Of a stretch of DNA of 64,000 bases, positions 17,230 through 45,459 are shown one piece after another. Location: contig NC_086386.1 in NCBI RefSeq assembly GCF_036588685.1, forward strand, positions 39,742,001 to 39,806,000. Reading direction: 5' to 3'. The notes below the pieces were generated by a model. That model had not been told where the DNA came from. It did not search any database and saw nothing but the letters and a program-made list of their open reading frames with translations. Position 1 is the stretch's first letter. Every line of letters begins with the position of its first letter. The DNA comes from Mytilus trossulus. Taxonomy: Eukaryota. The position numbers were made by a program, and so were the translations under genes.

Positions 17230-19052
17230 TAAAATGACAATGTTTTAAAACACAGCACCAGAGCATTTATATTTTATAATATGAATGAACAGTATAAATT
17301 AAGAGCGCTAGCAAGCTTTTAGACAATTGTATTAACGTATATGGACATTTCTTTAAATAAAAGCAATTATAATTTTGTAGACGTTTTCCTGTACATATAT
17401 CTCTTGTGTAGAGTTGTCAGTCTATCATGCCACATCTACTCAGTAGTTTATATACAACCTATTGATTTTCTCTGTTAAAACATTTGTATTATGTCTGATG
17501 ATTACTACCCATAATTTAATTGCTCAAGCACATAATCAATTTATTTACAATTCATCAGTGACACAAGCAGTTTAAATATAGCACCGAAATGTTATCATGT
17601 AATAAGATTCCGAGTATAAAAAGAGACTGTAATGAACTTTTTTTTAGAAAAACTCGCGTCTTCTGTTTCTGTATTTGTTCTGTTGAGTCACATGTTGATT
17701 GGTTGTGCAGCAAACGCTGTCATAGTTGTGATGTTATGCTATTGTTTCAAAATAAGGGAGAAGTTTGGATCCATTAAAACGTTTAATCCCTCTGCAGGAA
17801 TTTGATGTACACTAGTTGTCAATTGTTTATGTAATTTATACGTGTTTCTCGTTTCTCGTTTTTTTTTATATAGATTAGACATCTGTTTTGCTGTTTACGA
17901 GTACAGTAGCTGCATGTTCAGATAAGAACTTATCGAGTCGACATTTATTGATTAAACTCAGGTGATATTAAAATAATGTTTAACTAGTTCTATTTCAACA
18001 AATTATATCACAAATAAGTAAAGAGTGTTTTTTTTCTTTGAATTTCAATTTGGTGTTGCAATACTTTTTTCCATGTGTATATATTTCAAAAATACAATAT
18101 TATAATAAATAAATTTGTTAAAACAGAAAACAGATCCATAATACAGAGAAATGCAATATAATTAAAATACAAACAAAAACATCGAAAAAAGGAGGGGGTG
18201 GGGAAAAAATGTCCTATCTCAAAGTGCCTATGGCACAAATGATCCTCCGCATTCATCGTATGAAAATAATATGATATAATGTGCTTTGTTTGTTAAATTT
18301 TTTTATTATTCAAAATCTATAACAAAGAATAAATTGACTGGAATTTATATCATCTCAAATTATCTATACAATTGAATTTCAAGGGTAAAAAAATATAAAT
18401 CAGTATACGCAAAAAATGGTTGTGTTAGAAACTGCTCTTTTAGTCAATTCTGAGACATCATATATACGGTATGATAGTCCCAGTCTTCACGTCAAATGAA
18501 TCTGTATTGCAATCAGACTGAATGAAACCATGCATGCTGTGTTTTTTTAATATTGTTAGCATGTCTATCCGAAACTAGTATAACACTGTGTTATAGTAGA
18601 CACATTGTGACTCTTTCATTAAGCACAGTTCACCATGCTGCTTTCAATAGTTTTGTCAAATTGTAAAAACTCAGTATGCAGTGGCGGTTCTAGGGTCCAG
18701 AGGTTTAAACCACATTTTAACGACTCGAATTACTGCTTTTGAATAGAAACATATGCATGGTTGCACCCCCCCCCCCCCCAATAAAAATAAAACCGCGCAC
18801 GCACACACAGTTATCTTGGGTTGAAAGCCGTTTTTCAAAACTTGCTGGATCCTCCCCTGTCAGTATTGCATATATGTCTATTGCGTAATGCTGTGTCACA
18901 GTCTAACAGACTTATATTTATATTCAAATAAACTCTGTTTGAACAATATGATAGTATAGTCTCGGTTGATAGCATTTCAACTTCAAATCATTGGTTTTTA
19001 AATCGGACATATTTCCTTTGACCCAATCTATATCTAAACCGGCTTGATAAAT

Positions 19053-22000
19053 ATGGATAAGGGATCACCATATCCACAGTCGCAGCCTCAACAACAGTAC
19101 GGTCAACCTCCACAGCAGTATGGTCAGCCTCCACAACAGTATGGTCAACCACCACAGCAGTATGGTCAACCGCCCCAACAGTATGGTCAACCGCCCCAAC
19201 AGTATGGCCAGCCACCAGGTAAGAAGTCAGCTTTTATATATTGTTTTTTTTTTTATATTTTGAACCATTTTGTACAGTTATGTTGAATTAGAATTGTATA
19301 TTGTTTCGTTTTCCGTTTTATTAAACTTGTACTACTATAACAACAGAAAAATGTTGAGAGGTGAAAAATAGGGACATGGATTTGTTTTTATCTACTTGTA
19401 TACACTTTATTAAAGGTATTATGTCGGTTCGTCGACATGAAATTTATCAAATATTCAAGTTTTAAATACTGTTCATCCCAACCATTCAGATGAAAATATT
19501 AAATATGACACTGTTTAATGCAATATATTGAATGGAACAATTGTGTTCCTCTTTCAACAATGAGCAAGACCTTTACCGCATTTATACTCGTCAGCAATCA
19601 AATAAATTTCAAACAGTTCAAATGAGAAAACTAACTGCCTGATTTATGCATAAAACAATGAACGAAACACAGATATGATATCAAGCAATACAGTGTGTCA
19701 TTGTAAAAATAAAAAGAACTCAAAAGCAAAAGTGCGTTTGAGATCCATACCGACCAACTTAAACTTATTCCTTTATTCAATGGGGGAAAACTAACTGAAC
19801 AATGTACGTCATATGATAATGAGTTTAAACCTCCAAAATTAACCACCATTGCTGACAGTATAATTATGATATATTATGGCTACATAAGAATTAAAAATTT
19901 AATGCGATATAGAAAGGAAATTATATGAAGACTGTGTTATAACTTTAAAATCAATTACTTTACATAATGACACATTACTTGTTGAACAAGAAGCAATAAA
20001 TGGTCATTCACTATATATTCGCACAACATCCTGTCCACAAGTTAACAATTTTTTTTTTCTTTCTGTGACGTATTAAATTTATAATAAGATCCATTTTGTT
20101 ACAACCTGTGATCAATTTTATTTGGCAATCGCCAATGGCAGTCAGCAGGGTTAAAGAACATCAGTTGTTCGACCCGTTAGTCAAATGCGTTTTGTTTAAA
20201 TATACTTTTTCACTCTTTTGGTCTTTTGGAAAATGTTGTTTGTGCTGTTTTTAGACCCTTCTACAACGAAATTTGTTTGACATGCACACGTATAAAAATT
20301 GCGGTTTTTATCCAACGCAGTCATAGGTTTGAACGTAGTTTTCAATTTAGACTCGTTTATATTTTTTGTTTGGGCATGTATCATATTTTCCCTCCGGTTT
20401 ATATGATCCGTTCATCCTATATATTGACTCTTAAAATTCAAGAGTTAATCTAAAAATGAGGGTACTTTCTCTAAAAATGAGGGTGCTTTTTATATGGCCT
20501 TCCAAATACCGTTTCGATCCCTAACATCACTGAAGAGACATTTATTGTCGAAATCCGGATATGGTGTACTAAAGAAATATTGACACCGAATGTTTGTGGC
20601 ACAACATCCTGTCCACAAGTTAACAATTTTTTTTTTCTTTCTGTGACGTATTAAATTTATAATAAGATCCATTTTGTTACAACCTGTGATCAATTTTATT
20701 TGGCAATCGCCAATGGCAGTCAGCAGGGTTAAAGAACATCAGTTGTTCGACCTGTTAGTCAAATGCGTTTTGTTTAAATATACTTTTTCACTCTTTTGGT
20801 CTTTTGGAAAATGTTGTTTGTGCTGTTTTTAGACCCTTCTACAACGAAATTTGTTTGACATGCACACGTATAAAAATTGCGGTTTTTATCCAACGCAGTC
20901 ATAGGTTTGAACGTAGTTTTCAATTTAGACTCGTTTATATTTTTTGTTTGGGCATGTATCATATTTTCCCTCCGGTTTATATGATCCGTTCATCCTATAT
21001 ATTGACTCTTAAAATTCAAGAGTTAATCTAAAAATGAGGGTACTTTCTCTAAAAATGAGGGTGCTTTTTATATGGCCTTCCAAATACCGTTTCGATCCCT
21101 AACATCACTGAAGAGACATTTATTGTCGAAATCCGGATATGGTGTACTAAAGAAATATTGACACCGAATGTTTGTGGCACAACATCCTGTCCACAAGTTA
21201 ACAATTTTTTTTTTCTTTCTGTGACGTATTAAATTTATAATAAGATCCATTTTGTTACAACCTGTGATCAATTTTATTTGGCAATCGCCAATGGCAGTCA
21301 GCAGGGTTAAAGAACATCAGTTGTTCGACCTGTTAGTCAAATGCGTTTTGTTTAAATATACTTTTTCACTCTTTTGGTCTTTTGGAAAATGTTGTTTGTG
21401 CTGTTTTTAGACCCTTCTACAACGAAATTTGTTTGACATGCACACGTATAAAAATTGCGGTTTTTATCCAACGCAGTCATAGGTTTGAACGTAGTTTTCA
21501 ATTTAGACTCGTTTATATTTTTTGTTTGGGCATGTATCATATTTTCCCTCCGGTTTATATGATCCGTTCATCCTATATATTGACTCTTAAAATTCAAGAG
21601 TTAATCTAAAAATGAGGGTACTTTCTCTAAAAATGAGGGTGCTTTTTATATGGCCTTCCAAATACCGTTTCAATCCCTAACATCACTGAAGAGACATTTA
21701 TTGTCGAAATCCGGATATGGTGTACTAAAGAAATATTGACACCGAATGTTTGTGGCACAACATCCTGTCCACAAGTTAACAATTTTTTTTTTCTTTCTGT
21801 GACGTATTAAATTTATAATAAGATCCATTTTGTTACAACCTGTGATCAATTTTATTTGGCAATCGCCAATGGCAGTCAGCAGGGTTAAAGAACATCAGTT
21901 GTTCGACCTGTTAGTCAAATGCGTTTTGTTTAAATATACTTTTTCACTCTTTTGGTCTTTTGGAAAATGTTGTTTGTGCTGTTTTTAGACCCTTCTACAA

Positions 22001-25000
22001 CGAAATTTGTTTGACATGCACACGTATAAAAATTGCGGTTTTTATCCAACGCAGTCATAGGTTTGAACGTAGTTTTCAATTTAGACTCGTTTATATTTTT
22101 TGTTTGGGCATGTATCATATTTTCCCTCCGGTTTATATGATCCGTTCATCCTATATATTGACTCTTAAAATTCAAGAGTTAATCTAAAAATGAGGGTACT
22201 TTCTCTAAAAATGAGGGTGCTTTTTATATGGCCTTCCAAATACCGTTTCGATCCCTAACATCACTGAAGAGACATTTATTGTCGAAATCCGGATATGGTG
22301 TACTAAAGAAATATTGACACCGAATGTTTGTGGCACAACATCCTGTCCACAAGTTAACAATTTTTTTTTTCTTTCTGTGACGTATTAAATTTATAATAAG
22401 ATCCATTTTGTTACAACCTGTGATCAATTTTATTTGGCAATCGCCAATGGCAGTCAGCAGGGTTAAAGAACATCAGTTGTTCGACCTGTTAGTCAAATGC
22501 GTTTTGTTTAAATATACTTTTTCACTCTTTTGGTCTTTTGGAAAATGTTGTTTGTGCTGTTTTTAGACCCTTCTACAACGAAATTTGTTTGACATGCACA
22601 CGTATAAAAATTGCGGTTTTTATCCAACGCAGTCATAGGTTTGAACGTAGTTTTCAATTTAGACTCGTTTATATTTTTTGTTTGGGCATGTATCATATTT
22701 TCCCTCCGGTTTATATGATCCGTTCATCCTATATATTGACTCTTAAAATTCAAGAGTTAATCTAAAAATGAGGGTACTTTCTCTAAAAATGAGGGTGCTT
22801 TTTATATGGCCTTCCAAATACCGTTTCGATCCCTAACATCACTGAAGAGACATTTATTGTCGAAATCCGGATATGGTGTACTAAAGAAATATTGACACCG
22901 AATGTTTGTGGCACAACATCCTGTCCACAAGTTAACAATTTTTTTTTTTCTTTCTGTGACGTATTAAATTTATAATAAGATCCATTTTGTTACAACCTGT
23001 GATCAATTTTATTTGGCAATCGCCAATGGCAGTCAGCAGGGTTAAAGAACATCAGTTGTTCGACCTGTTAGTCAAATGCGTTTTGTTTAAATATACTTTT
23101 TCACTCTTTTGGTCTTTTGGAAAATGTTGTTTGTGCTGTTTTTAGACCCTTCTACAACGAAATTTGTTTGACATGCACACGTATAAAAATTGCGGTTTTT
23201 ATCCAACGCAGTCATAGGTTTGAACGTAGTTTTCAATTTAGACTCGTATATATATATATATATATATAAAAGTCTATAAAAAGGACCAACCAGCAAATTT
23301 AGTAATTTACTATGTACCGGATCGTCTAGAATAGGCGATACTATGCATGCAGATAAGGAAAAAAATATATCAGTCTAAAGATTTGCACAACGGTACTGAT
23401 ATAAGGTGTTATTAAACGAAAATGTTGTTATAAAATCGTGTTGACAAATATTTCGGCTCAACAAATGGCCTTCTTCTTGTGTCACAAGTTTTAACAATAC
23501 TCCTAAATGTATACGGTATAGGGTTTGATCGTTGTCGAAGGCCTCGCTGTGACCTATATGTGTGTACATCATTGCTCATTGTTGAAGACCTAATGGTTAC
23601 CAATAGCTATGTGCATCCTCGCCATCTTTTTACTGTTGGTTATTGTTCATTGTCGAAGGCCTTATTGTGACCTATAGTTGGGTACATTCTAACCGTTCTT
23701 TGGACACTGTTGCATAGTTATATTGGTCATTGTCGAAATCCACATGGTGACCTATAGTTGTGTAAACCCTCACCAGCCTTTGGTTTGGTAACTTTTGATA
23801 ATTGCTTATTGACAATCAAATCACATCTCCTAATTTTATATTGAGCTTTCATTATGTGTTATTGGTTAACTGTACACACAAACACACGACACGACACAAA
23901 GTCCTAAATATTACAGATTTTTAAGAATCATGTTTTGTACATTTTAATATATTCACAGCTTATGGTGGTGGACAGCAGCAACAGTCGTCAACAGTTGTGA
24001 TTGGACAGCCGCAGACTTTAGTGTTACAACAAACATACAGAGACTCGCCAGTACGTACGACGTGTCCATCATGCAATGCAGATATAATGACAGCCATTTC
24101 ATTTGAAGTAGGAACGATGGCTTGGGTAGTGGCTGGTTGTCTCTGTATATTTGGGTATGCTATATTGAATGAATAACGCACCATATTCGCATCGGCGGAT
24201 CCAGGGAAAATGGGGAAATTGGTTGATTATTAGTATATAGGGAATCACTTAGCATGACTGGAGCACCTTCCCCCCTTTAGGTCAGTCAGCGCTCCCCCCT
24301 TTATGAAAAGTTCTGGATACGCCACTGATTCGTCTTGTAAGATATGTTCTGTAATCAAAATACTTCAACAGGAAATTTTCAAAGTAAATAGATATAAGAA
24401 GATGTGGTATGATTGCCAATTATAGACAACTCGATCTCCTTCCAGGTCACAATTTTTCAAAAGTACACGGAGCCTATGTGTATTAATATATCACTGGCAA
24501 TCGTGTTGTATCAGCTATATACTCTGTGATGAGCACTGGCAATCGTGTTGTATCAGCTATATATCTGTGATGATATCGACACAAGACCTAGCCAAAAAAA
24601 ATCAAAGATCACTTTTGCAAAAAAGGGTCCAGATGTATACATGCCAGACTTATAAATGTAAATGTACACTATACCAATACACAAAATATAAAGTGGACTA
24701 TTTTGTGGATAAAATCCAAGAAACATAACTTAAAATGAAAACTAAACATGCCTGCTCTTTGGTCGGTTGTTGTCTCTTTGACACATTCCCCATTTCCATT
24801 CTCAATTTTATTGACAAATGAACGATAAATGAGCTCTGTCAGACAAATATGTACATCTTCCATTCATTCTATACACCTTGACATATTGAACTATTGGCCA
24901 TTGCACACAATAGTGGACTAAAATTTAACTACATTCAAGTCCATCCGCTCCACAGAGAGTCATATAGTACATAAACATATCACAACCACATCAAAGCTTC

Positions 25001-27205
25001 TTGTGAACATTTGAAGGTCACTACTATGTATTGGCTACCTTAACTACATGTACACAAGCAACCAATTAAATATCGTTTTATCTCGGCTTCTAGTAAGTGT
25101 TCTACAACTAATCTTTCAGTGCTTTTAACAAGTTCATTAACTACTATTAAAGAACTTATCATACACTATTGTAATAAAATATATGAACATAGTGGTATAT
25201 AAACTATATTTGGAGTGTAAGAAATTCTTTGGATGTTTTAGATAAAGTACGTGCTTTTGATGGTCCTTTTGATTCCGTGGACAGTTTTGATTTTTCTACT
25301 CTTTACACTACACTTCCACACTATCTTATTAAACAAAGGTTTCCTATTTAATGAAATGGTCGTTTGGTTAGTTAAGCTGAATGCAAATATATTTTCTGCA
25401 ACTCATTTAAACCCTTCTCCTCTAATGAGAAAGGTAAATACGCTAGATATACTTACTGGAGGTGTGATGAGATCATTTAAGCTGTTAATTTTCTTCTTGA
25501 TAATATTTATGTACGTTTCGGCAACAAAGTTATTCGACAGGTTGTAGGTATCCCCATGTGCACTAATTGTGCCCTTTAATAGCAGATTTGTTTTTGTACT
25601 GTTACGAATCAGTTTGTGACTAAACTCAGTAAAGACTCGTCGAAATTGCATTTAATTGATAAATTCAACAACATTTACCGTTATCTTGATGATATTTTTT
25701 CGTTAAATAATCAAGAATTTTCTCAATATACTGCTGAAATTTACCCCAAGGAACTTACTTTAAATGAATCAAATTTATACGGTAATAACTGTCCTTTCCT
25801 GGATTTAGATATTTAGGTTTTAAACGGGAAACTCCATACTAAAATTTACGACAAAAGGGACGTTTTTTCGTTCCCTATTGTTAATTTTCCATTTTTAGAT
25901 GGTGAGGTGCCTTTGGCACAATCTTACGGTGTTTATATTTCACAGCGCGTTCGCTATGCCCGTGTCTTGTGACGTTTTTGATTTTAACGAACGCAATCTA
26001 TGTATTACTGGTAAATTATTAAACCAGGGATATCGTTACCATAGATAACTTAAAACCTTTACGAAATTTTTCCATAGATATAAAGATTAGGTTTTGAAGT
26101 TTGGTTGTACCTGTAAAATACTTTTTTCAAACGGGATAGCACATCCTCATTTTTACGGAAGTGTTGTTAACCGGACCCGAAAATTTGTCCATCTGATGAG
26201 TTAAGCCTTTTTCAGCTGCTTTTTATAGTTCGACTGTTATACCACTGTACCAGGTTAGGGGAGGGTTTATATATGTGCCTGTCCCAAGTCAGGCGCCTGT
26301 AATTCAGTGGTTGTCGTTTGTTAATGTGTTACATATTTGTTTTTCGTTCAATTTTTATATAAATAAGGCCGTAAGTTTTCTCCTTTAAATTGTTTTACAC
26401 TGTCATATTGGGGCCTTTTATAGCTGACTATGCGGTTTTGGATTTGCTCATTGTTGAAGGCCGTACGGTTACCTATAGTTGTTAATGTATGTGTCATTTT
26501 GATCTCTTGTAGACAGTTGCCTCATTGGGAATCATACCACATCTTCTTTTGTTATAAATCACAAAAATATAGTATTGACAATTGAACCATGACAATTAGG
26601 TGACGATAAAACGCCAGACGAAATTTACCGCCACCGGATTATCATCGCTATGTCTTGCACTCTGCGATTTTGTCTGAAGCGAGAGAAAAACTGAAAAAAA
26701 AAGAAAAAAAAAAACCAACAAAAAAACCCCAACAATACTCACATAATGAGAATTAAAATATTAAACTGAGATTGGCCGCACACAGTCTGTTTGTGTACCT
26801 TAGGTATGGAAATTATTTCAATTTACATTAATAATTGTTTTGAAATTTATCAATATAGACTAAGTTTTATATATGTAACACCTTAACAATAGCAAGTTAG
26901 GGGATGCAAACTTATATTTTCGACGAGCTGAGCGAGTCAAAAACAAAATTTGAAGTAAATTTATAGAAATGTTCTTTATTAATCAGAGGACAACACATGT
27001 ATTGCAAATTTTAGGAAGGCGGATAGCTGCCACGCCCCTGCCTGAATCCGCGCATGAACATTGTACAATCAATCATTTGTCTGTCTTTTCTTGTAGGTTA
27101 TGGCTCGGATGTTGTCTGATTCCATTCTGTGTTGACGGCTGTAAGGATGTTGTTCACACTTGTCCAAACTGTAATCATATGGTGGGAAGGTTCAGCAGAA
27201 TGTGA
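19053..27205 (+). CDS. LITAF: LITAF-domain protein 2, 156 aa; join(19053..19218,23959..24154,27097..27205)
   Basis: 471-nt open frame with GT-AG junctions: MDKGSPYP..(QQYGQPP)x6 [60 protein letters not shown]. Confidence 0.92.
20021..23247 (+). repeat. 578-bp tandem array, ~5.6 near-identical copies, retrozyme/PLE-like
   Basis: Unit start GCACAACATCCTGTCC recurs at 20021, 20599, 21177, 21755, 22333 and 22911; ends in a (TA)n run; each full unit has a hammerhead core. Confidence 0.97.
20524..20567 (+). ncRNA. Minimal type I hammerhead ribozyme (copy 1 of 5; others 21102-21145, 21680-21723, 22258-22301, 22836-22879)
   Basis: ACATCA-CTGAAGA-GACA tttat TGTC-GAAA-TCCGGA-TA^-TGGTGT: stem I, CUGANGA, stem II, GAAA, palindromic short stem III, AUA cleavage triplet. 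Confidence 0.85.
24190..24327. mobile_element. MITE, CAGTGGCGGATCC-type TIR with 5-bp TSD
   Basis: ATTCG on both flanks; empty site with a single ATTCG in the gene 1 paralogous intron (~15710). Confidence 0.8.
24925..26185 (+). mobile_element. Penelope-like retroelement reverse transcriptase remnant
   Basis: Disrupted frames contain MYWLP.LH..PIKYRFISASSKCST, GIPMCTNCA, YRYLDDIF and PFLDLDI motifs typical of PLE RTs; absent from the gene 1 paralogous intron. Confidence 0.8.
26186..26555. repeat. Abundant short interspersed repeat (copies or fragments also near 14610, 23510, 39035, 58980, 60760)
   Basis: Recurrent core TTTGCTCATTGTTGAAGGCCGTACGGTGACCTATAGTTG...CTCATTGGCAATCATACCACATCTTC; class not determined. 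Confidence 0.75.
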
Positions 27206-28479: not shown

Positions 28480-28523
28480 ACGCTAGACGCGCACTTCGTC
28501 TAAAGAAGACTTATCAGGAACGC
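28480..28523 (-). ncRNA. Degenerate hammerhead ribozyme relic (same family as 42921)
   Basis: Reverse strand reads GCGTTC-CTGATAA-GTCT tcttt AGAC-GAAG-TGCGCG-TC-TAGCGT; both core boxes are mutated. Confidence 0.6.
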
Positions 28524-30644
28524 TAACATCAACACCGTTAAAATTGCCATATAAAGTACGAAGTTGATGAAGAACATTGCAAACTTATCATCTAACGTAG
28601 AAATTTGACAAAACATGTTCACTGCATAATATAGTCTGAAGATGAATGCAAACAAATTTGAAACTAGCATATACAAACTTATCCATGCAGACCAGTTTAT
28701 TTAACAATTTTAATTTTGACTTCATGTCACCTTTCATTTTGATAAAATTTAACCTTTTCCTTTTTTTTTGTATCTTAACCTTTTCTTATTTTAATTTTTG
28801 TATCTTAACATTTTCCTATTTTTTTGTATCTTAACCGTTTCCTATTTTTTTTTGTATCTGTAAAACAATACACGAATGAACGACTTTATTTGCTAACACA
28901 CCAAGTGGCCAATATTTAAAGCCTTTTCGGAACAAAGTTAAACATTTCAATGCTAAATTTGTCAGTATAAACATAACCAAACATTAGTATAGACAGAACC
29001 ATCAGTTAGTATATAGAAATAACCAGTGGTCAGTACATAGACATAACCAACAGTCTTTATAGAGATAGAACCAACTATCAGTATAAAGACAGAACCAACT
29101 ATCAGTATAAAGACAGAACCAACTGTCAGTATAAAGACAGAACCAACAGTCAGTATATATAGATAGAACCAATTGTCAGTATATAGACAGAACAAACAAT
29201 CAGTACATAGACAGAACCAACAGTCAGTATAGATAGAATCAACTGTCAGTATAAAGACAGAACTAGCAGTATAAGTATATAGACAGAACCAACTGTCAGT
29301 ATAAAGACAGAACCAACAGTCAGTATATAGACAGAACCAACAGTCAGTATATAGACAGAACCAACAGTCAGTATAAAGACAGAACCAACAGTCAATATAT
29401 AGACAGAACCAACAGTCAGTATATAGACAGAACCAACAGTCAGTATATAGACAGAACCAACAGTCAGTATAAAGACAGAACCAACAGTCAGTATATAGAC
29501 AGAACCAACAGTCAGTATATAGACAGAACCAACAGTCAGTATGAAGACAGAACCAACAGTCAGTATATAGACAGAACCAACAGTCAGTATATAGACAGAA
29601 CCAACAGTCAATATATAGACAGAACCAACAGTCAGTATATAGACAGAACCAACAGTCAGTATATAGACAGAACCAACAGTCAGGATAAAGACAGAACCAA
29701 CAGTCAGTATAAAGACAGAACCAACAGTCAGTATAAAGACAGAACCAACAGGCAGTATATAGACAGAACCAACAGGCAGTATATAGACAGAACCAACAGT
29801 CAGTATATAGACAGAACCAACAGTAAGTATATAGACAGAACCAACAGTCAGTATAAAGACAGAACTACCTGTAAGTATAGAGACATATCCAACTGTCATT
29901 ACAGATATAACCAACTATCAGTATATAGACAGAACCTACTGTCAGTACATATACATAACCAACTATGAGTATAGTATAACAAAGTTTATTGACAGAACCA
30001 AGTATCAGTATATAGACGAACGAACTATCAGTATAGACAGAACTAACGGTCAGTAAAGACAGAATTAACTGTCAGTATAGACAGAACCAACTCTCAGTAT
30101 AGACGGAGATGGAACCAACAGTTAGTACAGATAGAATCAACTGTCAGTATATAGACTGAACTTACAGTCATTATATAAATAGAACCAATAGCCAGTATAT
30201 AGACAGAACCATCAGCCAGTAAATGGACAGCACCAACTATCAGTACATCGACAGAACCAACTATCAGTACATAGACAGAACCAACTATCAGTACATAGAC
30301 AGAACCAACTATCAGTACATAGACAGTACAAACTGTCAGTATAAAGACAGAACCAAAAGTCAGTACATATAGAAAAAACTGTCAGCATAGACAGAACCAA
30401 GTCAGTACATAGACAGAACCAACAGTCAGAAAATAGACAGAACCAACAGTAAGTAAGTAGACAGAACCAACAATCAGTATGTAGACAGATCGAACTGTAA
30501 GTATAGACAGATCGAACTGTAAGTATAGACTGAATCAGCTGTACATAAAATTGAGAATGTATCAAAGAGACAACAGCCCGACCATAGAAAAAAAACCAGC
30601 AGAAGGTCACCTACAGGTCTATATATATATATATATATATATAT

Positions 30645-31449
30645 GATAATTTAGCTGATCTGTAACAATAACATCTTCATGCCTTATATATCATGTACTG
30701 TAGTACGCCGCTAGATTAAAACTGACGTGGAAAGGTAACACATGCCCACCGAGAGCTCTTTTTTTTGAGAGCCTAGGTGGTCGTGTGGTCTAGCGGGACG
30801 GCTGCAGTGCAGGCGATTTGGTGTCACTATATCACAGTAGCATGGGTTCGAATCCCGGCGAGGGAAGAACCAAAAATTTGCGAAAGCAAATTTACAGATC
30901 TAACATTGTTGGGTTGATGTTTAGACGAGTTGTATATATATATATATATATATTGCGAAAGCAAATTTACAGATCTAACATTGTTGGGTTGATGTTTAGA
31001 CGAGTTGTATATACATTATGTACACAGCCATGTATCACCATCATTGATGGCGATCCGATGGATACATCTGTTGTAGAGTTGTCACTTACTCAGACGTACT
31101 TATGCATATAATTATTTTCTGTGACTGTATCTTACATTAATTTGTAGGATCCTTTACTATAGATAATTTAGCTGATCTGTAACAATAACATCTTCATGCC
31201 TTATATATCATGTACTGTAGTACGCCGCTAGATTAAAACTGACGTGGAAAGGTAACACATGCCCACCGAATGCTCTTTTTTTGAGAGCCCAGGTGGTCGT
31301 GCGGTCTAGCGGGACGGCTGCAGTGCAGGCGATTTGGTGTCACGATATCACAGTAGCATGGGTTCGAATCCCGGCGAGGGAAGAACCAATAATTTGCGAA
31401 AGCAAATTTACAGATCTAACATTGTTGGGTTGATGTTTAGACGAGTTGT
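30645..31449 (+). mobile_element. (TA)n-embedded ~441-bp partial-tandem element with tRNA-like head
   Basis: Two segments separated and flanked by (TA)n; A-box-like TGGTCGTG(T/C)GG and B box GGTTCGAATCC at 30771-30866 and 31287-31382. Confidence 0.7.
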
Positions 31450-33320
31450 ATATATATATATATATATATAGACATACCAAACAGTCAGTAAAACTAGACC
31501 CAACAGTCAGTATAGGTTCCCAAACTGTTAATATTGACAGAACTAACTGTTAGTATAGACAGAACCACCCGTAAATATAGACAGAACCATTTTACATTCT
31601 ATTTAAAATAAGATTTATACTTTTTCTTAATGGGTGTTTCTGAAAAAAAACCAATTTATGAATGAACGACTTTGTTGTGGCCAATATTTAAGGACTATTC
31701 GGAACGAAATTAAACATTTCAATGCTTTATTAGTATAGACAGAATTAACCTACAGTATAGACAAAACCAACTGTCAGAATAGACAGAACTAACTGTCAGA
31801 AAAGACAGAACTAACTGTCAGAATAGACAGAACTAACTGTCAGAAAAGACAGAACTAACTGTCAGAATAGACAGAACTAACTATCAGAATAGACAGAACT
31901 AACTGTCAGAATAGACAGAACCGATTATCAGAATAGACAGAACCAACTATGAGAATAGACAGAACTAACTATCAGAATAGACAGAACTAACTATCAGAAT
32001 AGACAGAACTAACTATCAGAATAGACAGAACCAATAGTCAGTATACAGACTGAACTAAAAGTCAGTATGTAGACAGAAACAATTGTCAATATATAGAAGA
32101 TTCAACAGTAAGTAAAAAAGAACCATGTGTCTTTATGTATATAGAACCATCAGTTAGCACGTATGGAACCAAGTTCAGTATATAGACAGAACAAACAGTC
32201 AGTATATAGACAAAACTAAGTCAGTCAAGATAGACCCAACAGTTAGTACAGGTAGAACAAACTATCGGTATAGATAGAACAAACAATCAGTACAGATAGA
32301 ACAAACAATCAGTATTGACAAAACTTACTGTTTGTATAAACAGAACCAACTGTTAGTATAGACAGAACCAACTGTAAATATAGTTACATTTTGTTTTAAA
32401 TAAGATTTTACCTTTTTCTTAATTAGTGTATCTAAAAAAAACAATATATAAATGAACGACTTTTTTTGCCTAAACAAACAGTGACAAATAATAAAGGACT
32501 ATTCTGAACGAAGTTAAACATTCCATAGCTTTATTTGTCAGTAAAGACAGAACCAACTGTCAGTATAGACAACACCAACTATCAGTATAGACAGAACTAA
32601 TTATCCGTATAGAAAGAACCAACAGTCAGAATACAGATAGAACCAACTGTCAGAATATAGACAGAACTTACAGCCAGTATATAGACAGAACCAACTGTCA
32701 GTATATAGAAGATGCAGCAGTCAGTATAGAAGGAACCAATTGTCAGTATATAGACAGAACCAACTGTCAGTATATAGACAGAACAAACAGTCAGTATACA
32801 GACAGAACCAACTGTCAGTAAATAGACAGATACAACAGTCAGTATATATAGATATAACAAATTGTCATAGACAGAAACAATTATCAGTATATGGACAGAA
32901 CCAACAGTCACTATACAAACAGAACTTACTTTCAGTACATAGACAAAACAAACAGTTAGTTTAAAAACATAACCAAACAGTCAGTATATATAGATGAAAC
33001 AAATTGTCAGTACATAGACAGATCCAACAGTTAGTTTATAGACAGAACCAACAGTCAGCACATATAGAACCAACAGGCAGTATATAGACAGAAACAACAG
33101 TCAGTACATAGACAGAACAAACATGTAGTATAAAGACAGAACCAATTATTAGTATAAAGACAGAACCAACTGTCAGTATATAGACAGAACCAACAGTCAG
33201 TATATAGAAATAACCAACTATCAGTATATAGAAATAACCAACTATCAGTATAAAGAAATAACCAACTATCAGTATATAGAAATAACCAACTATCAGTGTT
33301 TAGATAGAACAAACAGTCAG

Positions 33321-40684: not shown

Positions 40685-45459
<4,775 letters not shown>

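Follow-up and report, generated by a model that had tools for sequence, protein, structure and literature searches.

Animal retrozymes make abundant ribozyme-derived circular RNAs, and the route by which these re-enter DNA, together with the enzyme involved, is still open. A tandem array in Mytilus trossulus raises this question in a concrete form. The array is located on contig NC_086386.1, at positions 20021–23247 of the 64,000-nt stretch of DNA analyzed (the window), and each of its full units carries a hammerhead ribozyme (HHR) motif. What kind of sequence is it, and how was it copied into its present position? The array appears, with a probability of about 80%, to be a single recent insertion, made by the steps proposed below, of a retroelement that is non-coding and non-autonomous and belongs with the non-LTR retrozymes of animals. 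Elements of this kind are already known; the 578-bp family to which the array belongs displays an insertion pattern that is unusually clear on the copying into DNA.

The array consists of five full units of 578 bp and one partial unit. The units start at positions 20021, 20599, 21177, 21755, 22333 and 22912 (spacing 578, 578, 578, 578 and 579). Compared with the unit at 20599, taken as reference, the full units carry two substitutions (unit position 155 in copy 1 and unit position 496 in copy 3) and there is a 1-T length change ahead of the last copy; the mean difference inside the array is 0.14%. This agrees with the preliminary description, made from the sequence alone, which gave 5.6 copies with about three differences, no meaningful open reading frame and a (TA)n tract at the right end. 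The longest open reading frame is 75 aa, and the right end adjoins (TA)11. Each hammerhead is preceded by a doubled motif as described, although the motif is 21 bp and not 20 bp long. The doubled-motif region (unit positions 429–503) shows the largest difference between old and young copies of the family. The GC content of the unit is 34%. The array is absent from the TRF output because the longest TRF period is 500. The 5′ end of the insertion is at unit position 1 and the last copy ends at about unit position 337–342 (window positions 23247–23253), the boundary being ambiguous over this interval since the array end merges with the TA repeat. Feature coordinates are in Table 1.

Table 1. Positions of the array, its predicted ribozymes and neighboring features in the window
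Feature	Position	Strand	Remarks
Putative upstream exon, QQYGQPP repeats	19044–19286	+	ORF; no Pfam match
TA-rich target remnant (tatatat) at 5′ junction	20012–20020		
Whole insertion, five full units and 3′-terminal partial unit	20021–23253	+	578-bp element, 5.6 copies
Internal site forming 3′ terminus of family insertions (unit ~310–342)	20330–20362	+	
Doubled 21-bp motif upstream of HHR, unit 1	20449–20489	+	
Doubled 21-bp motif, other units	21027–21067, 21605–21645, 22183–22223, 22761–22801	+	
HHR unit 1	20524–20567	+	Predicted cleavage after 20561 (A17 / stem I 3′ strand)
HHR unit 2	21102–21145	+	Predicted cleavage after 21139
HHR unit 3	21680–21723	+	Predicted cleavage after 21717
HHR unit 4	22258–22301	+	Predicted cleavage after 22295
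HHR unit 5	22836–22879	+	Predicted cleavage after 22873
(TA)11 target microsatellite at 3′ junction	23247–23268		
LITAF-domain exon, first half of zinc ribbon, downstream of array	23997–24176	+	PF10601, E 1.3e-10
LITAF-domain exon, second half	26969–27205	+	PF10601, E 6.3e-13

The hammerhead motif is 44 nt long and is found once in each full unit. All five motifs read ACATCA / CTGAAGA / GACA-TTTAT-TGTC / GAAA / TCCGGA / TA / TGGTGT. The type I core is complete in five of five units (CTGAAGA, GAAA, and a cleavage-site TA in young copies or TC in old copies of the family) and is surrounded by three helices of 6, 4 and 4 bp with stem I open. A covariance model, R1, trained on the HHRs of classical mussel retrozymes alone with the 578-bp family left out, matches all five motifs at 50.3 bits (E ~2e-10). 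Across three families 98.4% of the pair cells are paired, compared with 14–49% in slid controls, and double compensatory changes are present at 5 of 14 pairs and affect stems I, II and III, the independent events being few because just three lineages contribute. Thus the preliminary description was right in assigning one type I hammerhead to each unit, and by sequence comparison the HHR is homologous to the ribozyme of mussel retrozymes, which has been validated by experiment.

The hammerhead search with Infernal and Rfam that had been proposed gave a different outcome. At the gathering score no Rfam family, RF00163 included, matches the window, and searches of 3.5 kb and 91 nt in E-value mode (E ≤ 10) matched no Rfam hammerhead family. 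Classical mussel HHRs in the same genome reach 35–41 bits with RF00163. The same E-value searches displayed a 12-bit partial match to RAGATH-1-HH and chance matches to snoRNAs. The lack of an Rfam match is what a chance resemblance to a hammerhead would give, and the copy number at the locus could in addition be an assembly artefact. However, this is very improbable. The covariation across families and the score with R1 argue against it, the HHR descriptor has no match in 3.84 Mb of simulated composition-matched sequence, arrays of 2–11 units with the same architecture are found at 20 or more loci, each with its own unique flanks, and the array at 20021–23247 contains private variants.

Two details of the predicted cleavage were only partly as first described. 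The AUA cleavage triplet is present but conforms to the NUH rule, and it arose recently, as shown by the AUC in older members of the family. Cleavage was also expected to be best as a dimer. The minimum free energy structure of an isolated 71-nt segment lacks the hammerhead fold (z 0.31), as expected because stem III cannot close alone, and a homodimer cofold, with −26.7 kcal/mol as against −18.2 kcal/mol for a pair of separate monomers, forms stem I in trans and a stem III of 8 bp. Dependence on a dimer is therefore plausible by folding, but the geometry is that of the classical HHR, which is active from a cloned genomic repeat, and a dimer is thus not required.

The 578-bp family, which is young and dispersed, comprises some 1,500 insertions and some 3,100 HHRs. 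For the exact HHR core the count is 3,089 in the 1.3-Gb genome and 0 in the control. At least 233 units of 98–100% identity are found at 25 or more loci on many chromosomes, so that the dispersed copies which a genome search was expected to reveal are indeed present. A total of 1,471 insertions (0 in the control) share a common 3′ end at unit position 342, which adjoins (TA)n and is 379 nt downstream of the predicted ribozyme cut site. The loci that were read, at least 20, have variable 5′ ends, (TA)n on both sides, unique flanks and from 1.7 to 11 or more units per array, and tail-to-tail inverted pairs occur among them. Both junctions are intact in hundreds of insertions because the family is young enough. 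Since the 3′ end is fixed, the 5′ ends are variable and the arrays are multi-unit, the pattern is the signature of target-primed reverse transcription (TPRT) in which a multimeric or circular RNA is copied from one constant internal position. These findings extend the preliminary description in three points: (TA)n is the target, the 3′ end is internal and fixed, and the 5′ ends are random.

The setting of insertion 5′ ends by ribozyme cleavage was considered and rejected: 5 ends at unit positions 533–557 gave a hint among 22 loci, versus 6 of about 1,471 genome-wide.

Old copies of the family have the 3′-end region and the HHR equally conserved as their two least-diverged parts, the low divergence of the HHR being partly an ascertainment effect. 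The HHR consensus of old (86–93%) and young subfamilies is the same except for a permitted change at H17. Fixed differences between old and young number 15, of which one is in the HHR, and are too few for a test of constraint.

An ordinary satellite or minisatellite, amplified in place through unequal crossing-over and dispersed as DNA through (TA)n recombination or through Helitron or MITE capture, with no role for RNA in copying, would also be tandem and head-to-tail. It would be more homogeneous inside arrays than between them, as is the case here (0.43% versus 1.35% family-wide), and a 40-kb cluster on C14 does show higher-order duplication. The birth of satellites from the ends of Penelope-like elements (PLEs) by unequal crossover is discussed in a preprint (bioRxiv 10.64898/2026.07.22.740005). 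This origin is nevertheless improbable. One exact 3′ end in about 1,471 dispersed insertions with arbitrary 5′ ends indicates TPRT and not crossover or cut-and-paste; terminal inverted repeats and Helitron ends (5′-TC, CTRR-3′) are both missing from the insertions; and the family has high strand-specific transcription and the same target sites as a PLE.

The 578-bp family displays several traits of animal non-LTR retrozymes: tandem units with one type I HHR each, no coding capacity, GC below 50% and dispersed multiple copies. The closest comparison is with the non-LTR retrozymes of Mytilus galloprovincialis (~350–390 bp; Cervera & de la Pena 2020, PMC7229834), whose 44-nt HHR has an identical geometry: stem I has 6 bp, stem II has 4 bp and a loop of 5 nt, and stem III is a 6-nt palindrome. 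The two families share a tandem, non-coding, AT-rich and dispersed make-up and occur together in the M. trossulus genome, where insertions of the classical family, too, stop at one internal 3′ position, differ in their 5′ ends and have AT-rich flanks. Outside of the HHR there is no sequence similarity between them. The published Mytilus retrozyme primer 109D has no match in the window when up to 3 mismatches are allowed. The units differ in length (578 bp versus ~358 bp in the classical family), H17 is A in young 578-bp copies, unlike in the classical retrozymes, and the 3′ end is 379 nt past the cut site and not ~42 nt. In the classical family, the HHR of a cloned genomic repeat is active in vitro (kobs ~0.1 per min), and that family self-cleaves and forms circRNAs in M. 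galloprovincialis (PMC7229834), whereas for the 578-bp family cleavage is predicted from its motif and circles are proposed. The unit was thought to be longer than in typical animal retrozymes; this is so for the 170–400 nt range of the 2020 paper, but the unit falls inside the 51–972 bp consensus range of the vertebrate families in the preprint.

Vertebrate non-LTR retrozymes, newt satellite 2 and the axolotl retrozymes (PMC7229834; bioRxiv 10.64898/2026.07.22.740005) also have tandem HHR units, whose short stem III may let two hammerheads act as a dimer, and have been put forward as non-autonomous PLE derivatives. The preprint covers only vertebrates and a few outgroups and gives no analysis of insertion ends in Results part 1 and Discussion. 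The 578-bp family, in contrast, is from an invertebrate, and its target site and fixed 3′ end are readable from about 1,500 insertions. The LTR retrozymes of plants (PMC4918200) are likewise non-autonomous, HHR-bearing and expressed as RNA, which is processed to unit length. However, they have type III HHRs within LTRs, a PBS and a PPT, 4-bp TSDs and Gypsy-type mobilisation. The 578-bp arrays have no LTR-type terminal repeats at their flanks and directly adjoin (TA)n.

The proposed course of copying is as follows. Arrays would give rise to multimeric transcripts in the sense of the HHR. The ribozymes, acting singly or as pairs joined by the palindromic stem III, would cut these into 578-nt monomers, which a host ligase would close into circles. 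A (TA)n-specific Penelope-like reverse transcriptase (RT) with a GIY-YIG endonuclease would nick a TA repeat and begin cDNA at the fixed internal RNA site. The RT would then travel round the circle several times, or follow an uncut multimer, before it leaves the template. Head-to-tail units would result, in an array whose 3′ end is fixed and whose 5′ end is random.

The 578-bp family is transcribed on one strand and across unit junctions. Raw RNA reads cover the unit at a depth of 200–700x in two of four runs, with 0 in the flanking intron; these reads represent the whole family and are not provably from the locus at 20021–23247. The strand bias at the HHR is approximately 50:1, assuming a dUTP-type library. 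Reads span the unit junctions and also the 3′ junction into (TA)n. Together with the dispersed family and the homologous HHR, this transcription upholds the earlier view of a multimeric retrozyme-type insertion. The claim that transcripts are cut into exact 578-nt monomers did not fare as well: reads traverse the predicted cleavage site with no dip in depth and no significant pile of molecule ends. Reads with a loose end within 2 nt of the site number 8 and 13, and some run into adapter.

The same retroelement could also be copied without circles. The template would be a long uncut linear multimer, and the HHR would be hitch-hiking or a weakly active relic of a PLE pseudo-LTR. This is a possible but doubtful alternative. 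It is in agreement with reads that cross the cleavage site and the unit junctions with few ends, and the cut site shows no enrichment of insertion 5′ ends. The monomer fold is not rod-like: the linear unit has a z of −1.55, with 7 of 100 shuffles equally good, and the circular unit (−119.5 kcal/mol) has 55% of its bases paired, whereas described retrozyme circles are highly self-paired. PLE transcripts are themselves multimeric with an internal RT start (PMC11167929), and Naiad PLEs, which lack an HHR, proliferate well (PMC8557442). Against it, the HHR consensus is kept from old to young copies, the HHR covaries in three families, and the mussel sister family accumulates chiefly as circRNA (PMC7229834). 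Moreover circles would also give unbroken coverage over the site, and in short reads on a tandem reference circles and uncut multimers look alike.

Insertions of the 578-bp family have a PLE-type anatomy: a microsatellite target, a fixed internal RT start, 5′ truncation, and tandem and inverted copies. In PLEs, reverse transcription begins at constant positions inside the RNA and the nicks fall in AT-rich DNA (PMC11167929); their insertions are biased to (TA)n, show 5′ truncation and can be tandem or inverted (PMC8557442). PLEs, with their pseudo-LTR hammerheads and the internal RT initiation in PAc (PMC4209133, PMC8557442, PMC11167929), share with the 578-bp family microsatellite and AT-rich targets, 5′ truncation, partial tandems, tail-to-tail inverted copies and an RT start that is internal, fixed and located downstream from the HHR. 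Unlike PLEs, the 578-bp family has no open reading frame and consists of many full rounds of a short unit, not one ORF-bearing unit with a partial repeat.

The M. trossulus genome contains many intact open reading frames of 900–1,056 aa with GIY-YIG. A Neptune-like PLE (RT-EN) in this genome ends at (TA)n; of 20 arrays, 14 have its 3′ end no more than 2 kb away, and four of eight loci of this PLE family contain fragments of the 578-bp family. It is the likely mobiliser of the 578-bp family. Its 3′ UTR and the 578-bp unit show no similarity beyond chance except for the 7-nt TTTAGAC, which is near the 3′ ends of both. In the unit, TTTAGAC is contained in a predicted 11-bp hairpin of the site at ~310–342; the hairpin stops 3 nt short of the fixed end and is only weakly better than shuffles (z −1.7). 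The preliminary description had also proposed a search for PLE-attached copies; no HHR was seen in the PLE loci that were readable, and 12 loci with GIY-YIG matches have no similarity to the unit. GGATC-type cores, at first candidates for PLE pseudo-LTRs, are instead old decayed copies of the family in which RT open reading frames are absent.

A (TA)n target, a fixed internal 3′ start and random 5′ ends after several rounds of the unit are the prediction of PLE-type internal initiation on a circular or multimeric template, and the pattern suggests that one particular PLE, which targets (TA)n, is the helper. The general proposal that PLEs mobilise retrozymes becomes directly testable, since both the RNA site and the DNA target are now specified. 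A more specific version is offered tentatively: the approximately 1,500 events may record rolling-circle TPRT, in which a Neptune-like PLE with specificity for (TA)n works in trans, copies the HHR-processed circle from a fixed internal start and recognises only the short TTTAGAC/hairpin signal a few nt ahead of that start, the classical mussel retrozymes following the same rule. If true, an RT-entry site would be defined for the first time in an animal retrozyme, and the internal initiation that an anole PLE displays in vitro would have its counterpart in an invertebrate.

As to the host gene, the array is very likely sense-oriented within an intron of a LITAF gene, as judged from the plus-strand LITAF exons downstream and the QQYGQPP open reading frame upstream. 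Here the preliminary description is supported by the LITAF exons, the upstream exon and the splice structure being putative. The copy in the LITAF intron is probably a passenger that is neutral for the host gene.

The units of the tandem array start at positions 20021, 20599, 21177, 21755, 22333 and 22912 and are spaced 578, 578, 578, 578 and 579 bp apart, which bears out the preliminary description. The array is absent from the TRF output because the longest period in that output is 500. The estimate of 5.6 copies also holds. The sixth copy is partial, ends at about position 337–342 of the 578-bp unit and runs into a (TA)n tract, which had likewise been recorded at the right end. About three differences between copies had been counted by eye; with the unit at 20599 as the reference there are two variable positions in the full copies, plus one extra T preceding the last copy. 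The mean difference among the units is 0.14%, near the lowest of 18 arrays compared. The array has no meaningful open reading frame, as first noted, the longest being 75 aa, and the doubled motif described as 20 bp is a 21-bp motif found twice in every unit. With LITAF zinc-ribbon exons downstream on the + strand and an open reading frame of QQYGQPP repeats upstream, the array very probably lies in an intron of the LITAF gene and is sense-oriented to it, as originally proposed.

Coordinates of the array, its gene context and related elements (window positions unless a locus or contig is named)
Feature	Position	Strand	Remarks
Left junction of array	20020|20021		short tatatat remnant just before
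First hammerhead motif	20524–20567	+	44 nt
(TA)11	23247–23268		right end of array
QQYGQPP-repeat open reading frame	19044–19286		upstream of array
Coding tandem repeat, 21/42 bp	19083–19217		QQYGQPP heptads, in putative upstream LITAF exon
LITAF zinc-ribbon exons (PF10601)	23997–24176 and 26969–27205	+	downstream of array
Decayed classical-type hammerhead	28480–28523	−	core changed to CTGATAA and GAAG; 42.8 bits
441-bp tandem or permuted element	30620–31470		also in loci L030, L024, L040 and others
Half-unit fragment of classical ~358-bp retrozyme	42836–42998	+	stops at the usual 3′ position of that family, then atatata
Intact hammerhead of this fragment	42921–42964	+	69 bits (model R1)
Third retrozyme family, ~348-bp unit	L020:3680–4640		nested amid old 578-bp family arrays
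Cluster of 578-bp arrays (L004–L008, L011, L012)	G000:C14:22.046–22.086 Mb		~40 kb
Open reading frame of a Penelope-like element (L037)	G000:C6:40256835–40257335		547 aa open; 51% identical to the L044 reverse transcriptase
578-bp array directly adjoining this frame	C6:40254352–40256478		

One hammerhead ribozyme (HHR) per full unit had been described, and one is found. From 5′ to 3′ it consists of a 6-bp stem I, CUGAAGA, a 4-bp stem II with a 5-nt loop, GAAA, the palindrome UCCGGA (neighbours A15.1 and U16.1), A17 and the 3′ strand of stem I. The Infernal/Rfam search that had been suggested gave no report for the 578-bp family HHR at any threshold tried, and the predicted fold of the lone HHR segment is without a hammerhead. 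The latter is expected because stem III (AUCCGGAU) is unable to close a hairpin.

Three lines of sequence evidence, i.e. exclusion of chance, validated relatives and an independent model, indicate that the motif is a true hammerhead. A descriptor of the core and three stems has 0 matches in 3.84 Mb of simulated sequence with matched composition, and a chance origin is excluded. The classical mussel retrozyme of ~358 bp (Cervera and de la Pena 2020) is also present in the genome, where its HHR gives RF00163 matches of 35–41 bits about 357 bp apart. Loop 2 excepted, this HHR is that of the cloned Mytilus galloprovincialis Mg353 construct, which is capable of self-cleavage and whose family builds up as circRNA (PMC7229834). 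A third family, with a unit of ~348 bp, has an HHR intermediate between the 578-bp and classical types, with UGCGCA as stem III. The 44-nt geometry is common to all three families; 98.4% of pair cells are paired across them vs. 14%–49% with slid partners, and double-sided changes, which affect all three stems, are seen in 5 of the 14 pairs. Model R1, a covariance model built from the classical and 348-bp HHRs only, finds exactly the five array motifs in the 64-kb window (50.3 bits, E~2e-10), with two additional matches, the intact and the decayed classical copies.

Two HHR segments are predicted to pair, with stem I formed in trans and stem III extending over 8 bp; the predicted energy is −26.7 kcal/mol vs. 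−18.2 for two monomers. Because this predicted pairing is energetically favoured, a dimeric mode is plausible. The predicted fold of the monomer is unremarkable (z −1.55).

Dispersed copies are found by the proposed genome BLAST, with at least 233 unit matches of 98%–100% identity; matches of the family occupy at least 25 loci and most large contigs of the 1.3-Gb assembly. There are 3,089 exact copies of the ribozyme core vs. 0 of a reversed control. Older copies (86%–93% identical) carry an AUC triplet, so the AUA cleavage triplet is a recent change. The core of old copies has decayed randomly, as expected after insertion. Divergence in old copies is lowest in the HHR region and at unit positions 301–350; the HHR value is partly biased by the route by which loci were found, and positions 301–350 are free of such bias. 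In the contig C14 cluster one foreign sequence interrupts the arrays repeatedly at unit position 53. The cluster is a higher-order duplication of array plus insertion, so DNA-level amplification took place later than retro-insertion.

Junctions were read at more than 20 array loci. The 3′ end invariably falls at unit position 342 (…TTTAGACTCGTNTATAT) and blends into (TA)n, and the 5′ ends lie anywhere in the unit (positions 1, 33, 51, 95, 107, 181, 202, 250, 308, 394, 428, 456, 471, 506, 520, 533, 539, 547, 557 and others), also with (TA)n just before them. Copy number ranges from 1.7 to 11, and some insertions are tail-to-tail within a single TA tract. Across the genome the 3′ junction is present 1,471 times vs. 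0 in the control, and units are three times closer within arrays than between arrays. The combination of a constant 3′ end and random 5′ truncation is the hallmark of target-primed reverse transcription. The fixed end lies inside the monomer that the ribozyme defines, 379 nt beyond the predicted cut site, and the arrays exceed one unit; judged from these junctions, the template must therefore have been circular or an uncut multimer, and reverse transcription must have started at a set internal site. Linear processed templates predict 5′ ends clustering at the cut site, and only 6 of about 1,471 are located there. An internal start seems to be general for mussel retrozymes, since the classical family here also has a fixed 3′ end, ~42 nt beyond the cut, with variable 5′ ends and AT-rich flanks. 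The classical copies read (L014, L015, L017, L018, L041 and window 42836–42998) give the 3′ end as …TTTGATAACTATTTAC, found in seven of eight well-matched copies (≥90% identity).

Penelope-like elements (PLEs) initiate reverse transcription internally, at fixed RNA sites, and nick AT-rich DNA (PMC11167929); their insertions favour (TA)n, are subject to 5′ truncation and include partial tandems and inverted copies (PMC8557442). The 578-bp family insertions resemble them in internal start, (TA)n, 5′ truncation and the presence of tandem and inverted copies. Many intact PLE open reading frames are present in the genome. The 3′ UTR of a Neptune-like PLE (locus L044) terminates in …GTTTAGACGAGTTG at (TA)n, and 14 of 20 young 578-bp family arrays have this 3′ end no more than 2 kb away. 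Four of the eight loci of this PLE family contain 578-bp family fragments, typically tail-to-tail in a common TA tract. A target and machinery common to the two elements is supported. Descent of the 578-bp family from this PLE is unsupported: the unit has no homology to it except TTTAGAC close to both termini, and the portions of PLE loci examined contain no HHR.

Four raw RNA runs with the same species label were aligned to positions 19300–20660. The intron flank of the array has zero depth in all four. Two runs, X21 and X22, display 200–700x depth over the full unit, from about 6% of reads, and are one-stranded; at the HHR the first mate is on the minus strand about 50:1, which means HHR-sense RNA given the usual dUTP library type. 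This deep, strand-biased coverage vs. the empty flank shows that the family is actively and directionally transcribed. The other two runs, X23 and X24, show low two-stranded coverage, mostly at unit positions 60–340 (window 20082–20357), as expected for read-through of 5′-truncated copies. The contrast between the two pairs suggests tissue- or sample-specific activation. Reads span the unit boundary, with periods of 573–577, and in all four runs the element 3′ end into (TA)n. The RNA reads show neither a depth dip nor a significant end pile at 20561|20562, the predicted cleavage site; loose-end reads within 2 nt of it number 8 and 13, some reaching into adapter.

The element is of the retrozyme type, as had been inferred: it displays the testable features of an animal non-LTR retrozyme and behaves like these elements (PMC7229834). 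The family is a useful mechanistic read-out of this known kind of element. It is distinct from the published 350–390-bp mussel retrozymes, with only the ribozyme in common. The unit is longer than these, as the statement on typical animal retrozymes implied, but not outside the known range, since lengths of 51–972 bp are reported for such families in a 2026 preprint (bioRxiv 10.64898/2026.07.22.740005). No description of the 578-bp family was found in the literature, which leaves the absence of one unproven.

The 441-bp element is made up of two parts, one of 344 bp that terminates in GTTTAGACGAGTTG(TA)n and one of 93 bp that terminates in CTCAGACGTACT(TA)n. The longer part matches the Neptune-like PLE 3′ UTR in L044 (1960–2278) at 95% identity, and the shorter is possibly a PLE “tail” separating two reverse transcription start sites.
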